From positions 62,001 through 126,000 of the IMG/VR virus record IMGVR_UViG_3300044796_000657: a stretch of DNA of 64,000 nt, one strand, 5' to 3'. Numbering within the stretch: the first letter of the stretch is position 1; each line of letters starts with the position of its first letter. A model generated the notes under the pieces. It saw only the letters and a program-made list of their open reading frames with translations, did not search any database and was not told the origin of the DNA. Positions 2,953 to 32,946 of the stretch are shown piece by piece. A program made the translations under genes and the position numbers.

Positions 2953-3024
2953 TGGGCCGACCCGGATTCGAACCGAGAACCAAGACATTATGAGTATCCT
3001 GCTCTACCGTTGAGCTATCGGCCC
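2953..3024 (-). tRNA. tRNA with CAU anticodon, most likely tRNA-Ile2 (lysidine type); CCA not encoded
   Basis: GGGCCGA-TAGCTCAACGGTAGAGCA-GGATA-CTCATAA-TGTCT-TGGTT-CTCGGTTCGAATCCGGG-TCGGCCC-A. G1-C72 pair and no GGG/CCC anticodon stem argue against initiator; C4-G69/C5-G68 as in Ile2. Confidence 0.9.
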
Positions 3025-29624: not shown

Positions 29625-30404
29625 TCATTTGCCATGATGGGGAAAATAGGTTCTAGCAGCTTCTGTTTGATTATGAGCTGGCATCAAGGTTTCAAGAATT
29701 TCCACAATGTTGATAGGTCGATACCAAACATCCCAACCACAATCAAACGCACAAAAGATGCCGGGCAACTCACCGTGACTGTGACCATACAAGTTAATGC
29801 TGCGTGGTGGCTTCCCGCCTTCGATTGCTTGTCGATTGTGCTGTGACTTATTCCAAACCCTCATACTGTAATGAGTACACGTTAAGAGACTGCCTTTATA
29901 GACGATAGGGATTTTATGCTGATCGCAGAGCTTCCCTGACAACTGCAACTCAAATCCCATAGGGTGAATACCTTCAATGTATTCAGTCTCGCTCACCTCA
30001 TGGCACCGAGGGCATTTCTTTTCAAATGCCTCATTCTTATCAACGTGAAGGCAATTCAAGCATTGTTTTTGCCAGCGAAACAATTTCCAAACCGGTTGAT
30101 TACGAACTAATACGCCATCTCTTTTAACGAATATCCTATCGTGATTGCCACCAACCCAAATGATGTGTTTACAGTTAATGTTGTTCAAGTATTCTTGGAC
30201 TTTGGCAACATAAGCGAATTCATCATCCAATTCACCGGGCAAACCCAAATCGCCATTGTAGATGAACAAATCATCCGGTTTGACGTATTCGTTTGTGACT
30301 TCATAGATGTGTTTATTCATTGCGGCAGCATCGACATAAGGGCGTTTGCTGTACCGGATAACGTTGTTGTGATCAAGATGATAATCAGAACTATGCCAAA
30401 TCAT
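29625..30404 (-). CDS. Calcineurin-like metallophosphoesterase with Zn-ribbon insert
   Basis: SDYH, GDLG, GNHD, THY, GHSH; CLNC...CPRC insert; start MIWHSS after GAGG SD. Confidence 0.85.
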   Translation of the reverse strand: MIWHSSDYHLDHNNVIRYSKRPYVDAAAMNKHIYEVTNEYVKPDDLFIYNGDLGLPGELDDEFAYVAKVQEYLNNINCKHIIWVGGNHDRIFVKRDGVLVRNQPVWKLFRWQKQCLNCLHVDKNEAFEKKCPRCHEVSETEYIEGIHPMGFELQLSGKLCDQHKIPIVYKGSLLTCTHYSMRVWNKSQHNRQAIEGGKPPRSINLYGHSHGELPGIFCAFDCGWDVWYRPINIVEILETLMPAHNQTEAARTYFPHHGK

Positions 30405-30417
30405 ATTAAGCCTCGCC

Positions 30418-30493
30418 AACCCGCAGGGGATGGCATCGCACTGCAATGCCTTCCGCTGTTGTCAACGGAATCTGCCGGAATCCCCTGCGAGCT
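30418..30493 (-). ncRNA. Candidate three-way-junction structured RNA / 5' leader
   Basis: 14-bp closing stem and two 8-bp hairpins; all non-Watson-Crick pairs are G-U on the minus strand. Confidence 0.6.
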
Positions 30494-30501
30494 TCCCAAA
30501 G

Positions 30502-30530
30502 ATGATAACATATCACACGCTGTTTGTCAA
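30502..30530 (-). promoter_or_regulatory. sigma70-like promoter directly before the structured RNA
   Basis: TTGACA-17-TATCAT. Confidence 0.7.
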
Positions 30531-30558
30531 GTACTTTTTTGTGTATTACTGTACGGGA

Positions 30559-31176
30559 TTATTCCCAGTACTTCACCCATTCTTCACCAAATCTCTTCCT
30601 AAGTTCAGCCAAGTAAGCATTTGTTTTGATCTTGCACATCCACAATTCGTGCCGCTCACCACCCTTGCACATAACACCTTCACCAAAACTAAGCGGTGAT
30701 GAACGAATTGATTTAAAGAAATCTTCATCCAAAGCACCACAATAAAAGACTTCTGCTGATGGCACTATGTTAGAAAAGATTTTGACAAAAGAATCTGGTG
30801 AGATAATACCTTTTTTGTGAATGTTAACATCAATCAAGACGAGCTGCATTGGATCGCCTTGCACATGATGGCCAGCAAACGAATTAGGCCCGAACCATTC
30901 GCAATACGCAATCGCATTTTCACACTTCAAAACCTTTTCAAATGTGTGAGTTAAAGATGGGGCGAATTGTTTGAGAAACAATGGAATGGCAGCACCAAAA
31001 TCGGTGTCCTGATTATCGAATAGACGGGTTCGAGTACCAAATTTATACCATCCAGTTTTTCTATTCCACTCAAATCTCAAATTGGAACCATCGTATTTTT
31101 TAAATGCAATACATTTCAATGCCGGAGTTTGGTTGAGGAATTTATGTGCGTGCGGAATGGACGGATAGGGCTTCAT
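30559..31176 (-). CDS. RNA-ligase-like nucleotidyltransferase
   Basis: KYDGSN (motif I), CEWFG, EGVMCK, KIKT. Confidence 0.7.
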   Translation of the reverse strand: MKPYPSIPHAHKFLNQTPALKCIAFKKYDGSNLRFEWNRKTGWYKFGTRTRLFDNQDTDFGAAIPLFLKQFAPSLTHTFEKVLKCENAIAYCEWFGPNSFAGHHVQGDPMQLVLIDVNIHKKGIISPDSFVKIFSNIVPSAEVFYCGALDEDFFKSIRSSPLSFGEGVMCKGGERHELWMCKIKTNAYLAELRKRFGEEWVKYWE

Positions 31177-32188: not shown

Positions 32189-32641
32189 TCACTTAACATG
32201 AGCAGTTTCCACTTCTCGGTATGTTAAGCGTGCTTCATTACAGCCAGCCTTTGAACAACCAAAAGTACCTAGCGGTCTCTTGTTCTGCCCGTAAAGCCGC
32301 TTGCAATTCGGACAAACCGCTTGGAACTTCTTTGGCGGCAACAAGTGGCCGTCACCGCAAGTTACCTTATCAGAACATCCGAGTTTTCTTGCCATTGCCT
32401 TCCAAATGGCATTGTGCTTTTCACCCGGCGTTAGAGCGTGGGCCACTTCATGTAAGAAGGTGTCCATCACATGCTCTTCTGGCCCAACCAGAGCGTAGTA
32501 TCGGTTAATGTAAACCTTCTTCAGGCGATAGCAACACTCACCGAAACTTCTGTTGCCATCTTTGTATTCCAAAGCCCATCCCAAGAGCTTTTGTTCTTGA
32601 AAAATTTGTTTTGCTTTGGCTTCAAGTGTTTCGATGTCCAT
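32189..32641 (-). CDS. SprT-like zinc metalloprotease
   Basis: LHEVAHAL, H...WK, C-terminal CPNC. Confidence 0.8.
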   Translation of the reverse strand: MDIETLEAKAKQIFQEQKLLGWALEYKDGNRSFGECCYRLKKVYINRYYALVGPEEHVMDTFLHEVAHALTPGEKHNAIWKAMARKLGCSDKVTCGDGHLLPPKKFQAVCPNCKRLYGQNKRPLGTFGCSKAGCNEARLTYREVETAHVK

Positions 32642-32665
32642 TGCCGATCCCCTTTCTAGCCATTG

Positions 32666-32679
32666 GGGTGTATGGTCAC
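32666..32679 (-). promoter_or_regulatory. 14-bp element
   Basis: Exact copy. Confidence 0.85.
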
Positions 32680-32709
32680 AGTGTATCAGCAATCAAAACA
32701 AAAATCAAG

Positions 32710-32946
32710 TCAATTTTCTCTCCGATTTTTCCTGTACGTAATACGCCCTTTGGTTAAATCGTAAGGGGATATTTCCACTGTCACATAATCGCCGGGAATG
32801 ATCTTAATGTAATTTCGACGCATCTTCCCGGCAATGTGAGCAATGATTTCAGCATTGTCAACATCTAATAGCTGAACACGAAAATTAGTGTTAGCCAATG
32901 CCTCAATCACTCGACCTTCCAATTCAATTGCTTCTTCTTTTGCCAT
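32710..32946 (-). CDS. infA: Translation initiation factor IF-1
   Basis: [15 protein letters not shown]....FRV...[33 protein letters not shown]. Confidence 0.97.

Follow-up and report, generated by a model that had tools for sequence, protein, structure and literature searches.

On the minus strand of a large phage genome, the spacer between an RNA-ligase-like gene and a metallophosphoesterase gene encodes a sequence predicted to fold into a branched RNA, right at the start site of a sigma70-type promoter. What does such a structure do at this place? It may act in cis as the 5′ leader of the phosphoesterase mRNA, it may be released as a small RNA acting in trans, or it may be an insertion or accident of the DNA without a selected RNA function. 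A preliminary description of the locus had proposed a three-way-junction RNA here and had left a cis-regulatory leader, a small RNA and a tRNA-sized decoy side by side as possible roles. The structure, its promoter, its neighbours and its counterparts in related phages are considered here in turn, and the readings that they allow are weighed against each other.

The locus and its flanking genes

The window, i.e., the whole stretch of DNA that was analysed, comprises 64,000 nucleotides (bases 62001-126000) of an IMG/VR virus record of 430,229 bp with 43% G+C (IMGVR_UViG_3300044796_000657); this length, together with the 37 tRNA genes and the tmRNA found in the same genome, marks the record as a jumbo phage. 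DNA identical to the window is found in peat metagenome assemblies. The features of the locus are collected in Table 1.

Table 1. Features of the element, its promoter and its neighbourhood; positions are those of the window unless a contig is named.
Feature	Position	Strand	Details or basis
RNA-ligase-like nucleotidyltransferase gene, 205 aa, upstream	30559-31176	-	KxDG at K27-G30
Promoter, sigma70 type	30502-30530	-	-35 TTGACA 30530-30525; 17-nt spacer; extended -10 TG 30510-30509; -10 TATCAT 30507-30502
Candidate P0 5′ arm, -10-region RNA, in read-through transcripts only	30497-30512	-	predicted pairing with SD/AUG region 30415-30392
P1 5′ arm, 14 nt	30480-30493	-	sequence and RNAfold
J1/2 linker UCCGGCAGA, 9 nt, single-stranded	30471-30479	-	sequence and RNAfold
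P2 hairpin, 8 bp including one G-U, loop ACAA	30451-30470	-	pair probabilities 0.74-1.0
P3 hairpin, 8 bp including one G-U, loop AGU	30432-30450	-	pair probabilities 0.98-1.0
P1 3′ arm, 14 nt, two G-U with the 5′ arm	30418-30431	-	sequence and RNAfold
SD GAGG and ATG of the phosphoesterase gene	30414-30411 and 30404-30402	-	sequence
Calcineurin-like metallophosphoesterase gene, 259 aa, downstream	29625-30404	-	CxxC...CxxC insert
Slot tRNA-Lys(CUU) in the nearest relative	L117:2870-2946; L118:96-172; L119:353-429		

On the minus strand, the ligase-like gene is followed by a 154-nt spacer and then by the phosphoesterase gene; that the element lies between genes of these two kinds, as first described, is supported by their protein families. 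The 205-aa ligase-like protein matches phrog_548, annotated as "RNA ligase" (E 8e-11), and its kin carry PF09414, with K27, D29 and G30 invariant; the family of about 200 aa to which it belongs consists of the nucleotidyltransferase domain only, with the KxDG motif. The phosphoesterase matches phrog_547 (E 1e-24), scores slightly below the cut-off of PF00149 and has invariant GNHD and GHSH motifs; its start codon is confirmed by the N-terminus MIW(H), which is conserved in relatives. Searches of PDB sequences with both enzymes returned nothing useful, and the ~200-aa ligase-like family is without a PDB relative by sequence.

Several other features of this phage deserve mention in their own right. 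The phosphoesterase contains a four-cysteine insert (CLNC ... CPRC) whose cysteine positions are conserved in close kin; the insert probably forms a zinc ribbon, and it may serve in nucleic-acid binding. The ligase is preceded, at a distance of two to five genes, by a phage-encoded IF1/eIF-1A homologue (78 aa; PF01176, E 2e-25; 32710-32946, minus strand) and, after it, a SprT-like metalloprotease gene (32189-32692, minus strand), a pair that is kept in the contigs of relatives. The tmRNA of the phage, located outside the window (genome 131045-131411, minus strand), encodes the tag VEPELRMAA. At genome 399874-399948 (plus strand), ARAGORN reads a tRNA with the four-base anticodon ggaa, which may be a frameshift-suppressor-like tRNA or a mis-called one.

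A compact three-way junction

The element proper (minus strand, 30493-30418) is a 76-nt three-way junction with 30 base pairs, four of them G-U, and no bulges. The closing helix P1, the 9-nt linker and the hairpins with the loops ACAA and AGU are all present as they had been described, and the minimum free-energy structure computed by RNAfold is the same; it is also the centroid, with an energy of -46.3 kcal/mol (z = -5.64), and none of 200 dinucleotide shuffles folds as well. The helices keep pair probabilities of 0.6-1.0 in short as well as long sequence contexts, with values close to 1 when the transcript is extended. There are zero unpaired bases between P2, P3 and the 3′ arm of P1; since P3 abuts this arm, P3 and P1 could stack into one helix of about 22 bp.

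Compared with the rest of the genome, the element is an extreme case. In a genome-wide folding scan done on a coarse grid, it ties, when correctly phased, with the most stable 80-nt segment of the 430-kb genome (mean -14.7, sd 5.3), and among 131 promoter-proximal leaders it is the most structured (mean -16.5, sd 6.8). The strand is informative as well. All four non-Watson-Crick pairs (30492/30419, 30490/30421, 30465/30456 and 30445/30437) are indeed G-U when read on the minus strand, an outcome whose chance under neutral decay of a DNA inverted repeat is about 0.004-0.013, and the plus strand folds 13 kcal/mol worse, at -33 kcal/mol (z = -3.2). The strand bias of the G-U pairs and the poorer plus-strand fold indicate filtering at the RNA level and bear out the earlier proposal of an RNA-type, strand-specific structure. 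By these computational measures, the predicted fold is confirmed as real and beyond chance.

A direct repeat of GAUUCCG is present on the minus strand at 30482-30476 and 30472-30466, running from the end of P1 across the linker into the first bases of P2. A junction that formerly had no linker may have acquired its 9 nt through a 10-nt tandem duplication.

Promoter and predicted transcript

The promoter in front of the element matches the sigma70 consensus at 11 of 12 positions and has the TG of an extended -10 box; the idea that the RNA starts at a sigma70 site is, with such a predicted promoter, credible. Transcription would begin at G30495 or A30494, as judged from the position of the -10 box. 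The distance between this box and P1 is 8 nt, just as estimated before, P1 begins 0-2 nt past the predicted start, and the fold would occupy positions +3 to +78 relative to the predicted start of this early-type promoter.

Promoters of this quality are more frequent in the genome than expected: sites with at least 11 of 12 consensus positions number 35, compared with 6-20 in shuffled sequences, and 21 of the 35 are intergenic. Fifteen of them form a minus-strand series at genome 65-137 kb, the block that contains the locus, and one such promoter (genome 131475-131502, just outside the window) drives the tmRNA gene of the phage. This promoter class is genuinely used in this block of the genome. 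On a wider view, near-consensus sigma70 promoters, many of them with an extended -10 TG, are dense on the minus strand between 3220 and 62004 of the window and on to genome 137 kb, and this series suggests that a large block is transcribed by host polymerase.

The leaders behind 14 other near-consensus promoters of the block are unstructured (MFE -3 to -22), and in 10 of the 14, the ten with a called start, the start codon is found 17-41 nt from the predicted transcription start. Without its 76-nt junction, the leader of the element would be about 15 nt long, which is a normal length; the junction thus looks like a discrete module inside an ordinary leader. Between P1 and the SD of the phosphoesterase gene there are only the three nucleotides GGC, in agreement with the gap noted previously, and neither the sequence nor a terminator scan reveals a U-run or a terminator after P1. 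With no terminator and an SD 3 nt downstream, the transcript from this promoter must run into the phosphoesterase gene; the RNA made from the promoter would thus be the phosphoesterase mRNA, and the junction its 5′ end.

Representation in a peat RNA library

The RNA-library data consist of Logan contigs, which come without strand, ends or usable depth and may include carried-over DNA; read within these bounds, one peat RNA library contains 80% of the words sampled from the 4 kb that surround the element, and contigs from it cover 28 of 30 bins, including the element and both genes. Two of the contigs extend over 29949-30441 and 30447-30948, and since the latter extends across the promoter, either read-through RNA or contamination with DNA must be present too. 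The contig end at 30441 falls in the loop of P3 and carries adapter; as adapter also terminates four other contigs within 4 kb, this break is not counted as an RNA end. The RNA-library contigs share their outer ends (28420 and 30948) with a 2,529-nt JGI contig (L122), which may be another assembly of the same data. These contigs hint at transcription of the element; at most, they show that an RNA library contains the region and that some molecules reach beyond the promoter-proximal transcript.

Searches for known families and homologues

The element had not been assigned to any RNA family, and database comparison leads to the same result. In a search of the whole window with Rfam 15, only a tRNA-Met at 2953-3024 passes the gathering score and nothing is found on the element; in the segment 30300-30650, three chance matches appear at E<=10, none of them on the element. 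A tRNA or tRNA-like RNA was considered and rejected: ARAGORN finds nothing in bacterial or mitochondrial mode, nor with thresholds relaxed to 80-90%, RF00005 gives no match at E<=10, and the element has no cloverleaf, D arm, T arm or anticodon-loop-like loop. The self-cleaving ribozymes built on three-way junctions (hammerhead, twister-sister) were rejected as well, with J2/3 and J3/1 being of zero length and no Rfam match; hammerhead-type cores are excluded because the junction has a single unpaired strand, UCCGGCAGA.

Homologues were sought at several depths. BLAST of the locus against 50,697 GenBank phage records gave no match in either near or distant mode. A covariance model built from the junction (R1) finds only the element itself in its own 430-kb genome (110.7 bits), where short-word BLAST likewise sees one copy; it finds nothing below E = 9.5 across 90 related loci and nothing in five whole related jumbo-phage genomes, and about 120 loci fetched in all yield no credible R1 match. 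Scanning IMG/VR with a pattern anchored on P1 and with another on the linker plus P2 brought up 2 and 6 chance matches, none with the fold; in 185,579 species genomes, a pattern scan returned 23 matches, which are plain long inverted repeats or paired terminator-like palindromes and none of which is a three-way junction. Searching IMG/VR for close relatives with the phosphoesterase alone returned nothing. The other copies of the locus (L120-L122) match the window at 100% identity over as much as 8.8 kb and therefore represent the same phage. A conserved RNA family centred on the element was consequently rejected, as no homologues with compensatory changes occur in the loci and genomes searched. 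As far as sequence can tell, the element is an orphan, present as a single instance and new as a sequence family.

The P1-anchored scan also brought up long inverted repeats in Rathayibacter tritici (L216:154-234 and L237:4402-4482) and in a Desulfuromusa MAG (L217 and L221), with two copies per genome in each case. These repeats bear no relation to the phage element and resemble small families of palindromic repeats.

The same slot in related phages

Homologues of the phosphoesterase and of the ligase are each numerous; the two genes are adjacent in only three other lineages, where the spacer measures 124, 40 and 3 nt versus 154 nt here. In the closest relative (L117-L119), whose phosphoesterase is 63% identical, the slot is filled by a tRNA-Lys(CUU), which begins 2 nt past the stop codon of the ligase and scores 50.5 bits with the Rfam tRNA model. 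The 40-nt slot of L208 is without structure, and the contig of the third lineage has a 3-nt gap according to its gene table. More distant phosphoesterase genes adjoin their upstream gene directly. With three lineages lacking the element and the distant genes abutting their neighbours, the leader is dispensable for the phosphoesterase gene family.

tRNA-Lys is a classic target of the anticodon nucleases that phages counter, and the cassette of the nearest relative may thus be a tRNA-Lys rescue module. The link between ligase and tRNA extends further: in 31 of 80 more distant IMG/VR jumbo-phage loci (L123-L202), the ~200-aa ligase family is located inside same-strand tRNA arrays, often only a few bases away from a tRNA, and in some of these a tRNA starts 2-5 nt past the ligase stop (e.g., L169:3120-3197, L182:3108-3184, L167:2419-2496). 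This family of small jumbo-phage RNA ligases is tightly tied to tRNA genes. In the phage that carries the element, the ligase lies outside a tRNA array and tRNA-Lys(CUU) is encoded elsewhere in the genome.

A proposed leader of the phosphoesterase mRNA

We tentatively read the element as a lineage-specific, cis-acting 5′ leader of the phosphoesterase mRNA, an interpretation to which we would give slightly less than even confidence. Host sigma70 RNA polymerase would start at about 30495 and the first 78 nt would fold during synthesis, P2 forming first, then P3, and then the closure of P1; the product would be a very stable three-way junction whose first pair is 0-2 nt from the 5′ end. Stem-loops at the 5′ terminus, such as that of the ompA leader, protect bacterial mRNAs from 5′-end-dependent decay, and the paired 5′ end of the element would shield the phosphoesterase mRNA from decay of this type (by RppH and RNase E, or by RNase J). 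The compact fold would at the same time keep the SD and the AUG, starting 3 nt downstream, clear of upstream sequence. When transcription reads through from the ligase gene, the junction would act as a clamp that draws the transcribed -10 sequence to the SD and AUG, masking both, and the phosphoesterase would be translated mainly from transcripts of its own promoter. We infer both the stabilising effect and the gating from structure and position. Two further effects are conceivable: the junction could protect the 3′ end of a processed ligase mRNA, and P1 stacked on P3 (~22 bp) could be a site for RNase III.

The gating part can be judged from predicted accessibilities. With at least 40 nt of upstream RNA, the predicted probability of being unpaired is 0.07-0.18 for the SD and 0.14-0.29 for the AUG, compared with 0.51 and 0.43, respectively, when upstream RNA is left out. 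The P0 helix that would be responsible is weak (ddG -7.2 kcal/mol, with four G-U pairs and an internal loop), and 1.5-3% of control upstream sequences, shuffled or random genomic, mask the SD and AUG equally. Masking through P0 is less certain than the effect at the 5′ end and, in these predictions, modestly unusual (p ~0.015-0.03).

Several lines of evidence favour the leader among the roles first proposed. The absence of a terminator, the SD following P1 after 3 nt and the leader of about 15 nt that remains when the 76 nt are deleted all point to a function in cis; to these are added the fold statistics, the quality of the promoter and the G-U bias and, further, the predicted masking in read-through transcripts, the RNA-library contigs and the precedent from phage T4. 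On the other hand, the interpretation is weakened by the lack of any homologue found, hence of any sign of long-term selection, and by the three related lineages that do without the element. It is also weakened by the size of the structure, since a single hairpin would be enough for protection of the 5′ end and a 30-bp junction exceeds this need.

Other readings of the element

Rather unlikely, in our view, is that the junction serves as a processed or stand-alone stable small RNA of about 76 nt, which would occupy the tRNA slot of an RNA-repair cassette and act in trans. Such an RNA would be made from its own promoter and released by a cut just past P1, and it could interact with host nucleases directed at tRNAs, as their decoy or their partner, or be a partner of the ligase and phosphoesterase of the phage; the T4 RNAs C and D offer parallels, as does Y RNA with Ro and RtcB. 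The idea of a tRNA-sized small RNA is kept alive by the bona fide tRNA-Lys(CUU) that the closest relative carries in the exact slot and by the ligase family residing within tRNA arrays at 31 of 80 loci; the length of the junction is that of a tRNA, and its promoter belongs to the class that also drives the tmRNA of the phage. In jumbo phages, tRNAs are combined with ligases and phosphoesterases for the repair of RNA (PMC7824862), and the tRNA region of T4 yields small RNAs of unknown role, RNAs C and D (PMC3014915). However, neither a terminator nor a recognisable processing signal is found past P1, and a cut there, 3 nt before the SD, would remove or damage the leader of the phosphoesterase. 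The junction moreover has no tRNA features and no loop resembling an anticodon loop, its ligase is not part of a tRNA array, and the phage already has a tRNA-Lys(CUU) gene at another site. The more specific proposition of a novel type of phage small RNA, promoter-driven and tRNA-sized without being a tRNA, which would have come to occupy the tRNA slot and would work with the ligase and phosphoesterase or replace tRNA-Lys, is quite improbable; in that case the junction might be a decoy or sponge for a host defence nuclease that targets tRNAs, or a Y-RNA-like scaffold for repair.

A DNA accident or selfish insertion, that is, a small inverted repeat (MITE-, REP- or PeSL-like) or a recombination scar that came with a promoter, would be transcribed but have no selected RNA function; we regard this origin as unlikely. 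Cassettes of a promoter plus a stem-loop mediate the shuffling of genes in T4-like phages (PMC4122927). At the present locus, the slot is hypervariable among relatives (154, 124, 40 and 3 nt), the element ends in 14-bp terminal inverted repeats, its perfect helices suggest a young age, and the linker resembles a 10-nt tandem duplication, with GAUUCCG occurring twice. Mobile repeat families of the MITE, REP and PeSL type are, to our knowledge, multi-copy, whereas the element is a single copy with none in five related genomes, and no target-site duplication accompanies it. A mere DNA repeat is also at odds with the four DNA-level mismatches being all G-U on the transcribed strand and with the inferior fold of the plus strand. 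Finally, the stem-loops of PeSLs are terminators, while the element has no U-tract and comes after its promoter rather than before it.

The leader could in principle respond to a ligand or a protein, as a riboswitch-like structure or as an operator for the Zn-ribbon phosphoesterase or another phage protein, with the 9-nt linker and the duplicated GAUUCCG permitting a switch. The three-way junction does have one long single-stranded joining strand and lies beside the SD, the GAUUCCG duplication could offer alternative pairing partners to the 3′ strand of P2, and the CxxC...CxxC insert of the phosphoesterase might bind nucleic acid. Yet one structure dominates the ensemble and the alternative pairing of P2 is negligible; loops of 3 and 4 nt and perfect helices form no obvious ligand pocket; there is no expression platform, with the SD outside the fold; and the leader is conserved in no relative of the phosphoesterase gene. 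A responsive leader therefore seems very unlikely. Least probable of all is a put-like nascent-RNA antiterminator, which would bind host RNA polymerase and make it resist pausing and termination across the downstream early genes: size and position, at +3 to +78 past an early-type promoter, fit putL, but put consists of two tandem bulged stem-loops with a V shape and a triplex, where the element is a junction closed by 14 bp whose perfect helices lack the bulges that put needs, no convincing intrinsic terminator occurs downstream on the same strand before the next promoter, and only one copy exists in 430 kb despite the many early promoters.

Significance

The fold cannot be placed in any known family, and the role that seems likeliest for it is of an already known kind. 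Should the leader interpretation be true, the element would be one more case of a phage RNA structure tuning a single early gene, of modest general importance; its unusually clean and compact junction would be a possible natural insulator part. The slot behind the ligase is a site of exchange, occupied by a tRNA-Lys in one lineage and by a non-tRNA fold in another. If this fold were released as a small RNA that acts together with the repair enzymes or counters tRNA-cleaving defences, a new class of phage counter-defence RNA would be opened.

Comparison with known systems

Among phage elements, the PeSL cassettes of T4-like phages (PMC4122927, PMC2839356) share with the element a near-consensus sigma70 promoter combined with a stable RNA structure at a variable spot; they differ in being many-copy simple hairpins that act as terminators, in contrast to a single-copy, branched and non-terminating structure. 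Phage tRNAs and the T4 RNAs C and D resemble it by the slot beside a ligase of about 200 aa, by the 76-nt size class and by the RNA-repair neighbourhood. A cloverleaf, the T and D arms and an anticodon loop are all missing from the element, unlike in phage tRNAs, and what follows it at once is an SD instead of processing sites.

The putL RNA of phage HK022 measures about 70-73 nt, starts at +2/+3 past an early sigma70 phage promoter and needs no protein factors (PMC9378689). Both are thus phage RNAs of about 70-76 nt, placed at +2/+3 of an early sigma70 promoter and folding, or predicted to fold, during synthesis. They part ways in architecture, as put has two bulged stem-loops and a triplex in stem I and the element is a closed junction with perfect helices; there is also no known sequence match, nor an evident terminator downstream of the element.

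The leader interpretation finds its parallels in two other systems. With the 5′ stem-loops of the ompA type, the element shares a helix within about 2 nt of the (predicted) 5′ end and an SD that stays free downstream; the ompA-type structure is a single hairpin at the start of its mRNA, whereas the element is a three-way junction of 30 bp behind a predicted start. In the T4 genes e, soc, 49 and I-TevI, unmasking of the ribosome-binding site depends on the site of transcription start (PMC3014915). T4 uses late promoters for this gating and the promoter of the element is of the early sigma70 type; the masking helix proposed here is also weak (ddG about -7 kcal/mol), predicted by in silico folding, and would enclose the 76-nt junction as its loop. 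The logic would be the same in both cases: the proximal promoter lies within the 5′ arm of the helix that masks, or here is predicted to mask, the SD and AUG, and this helix would form only in transcripts that read through from upstream.
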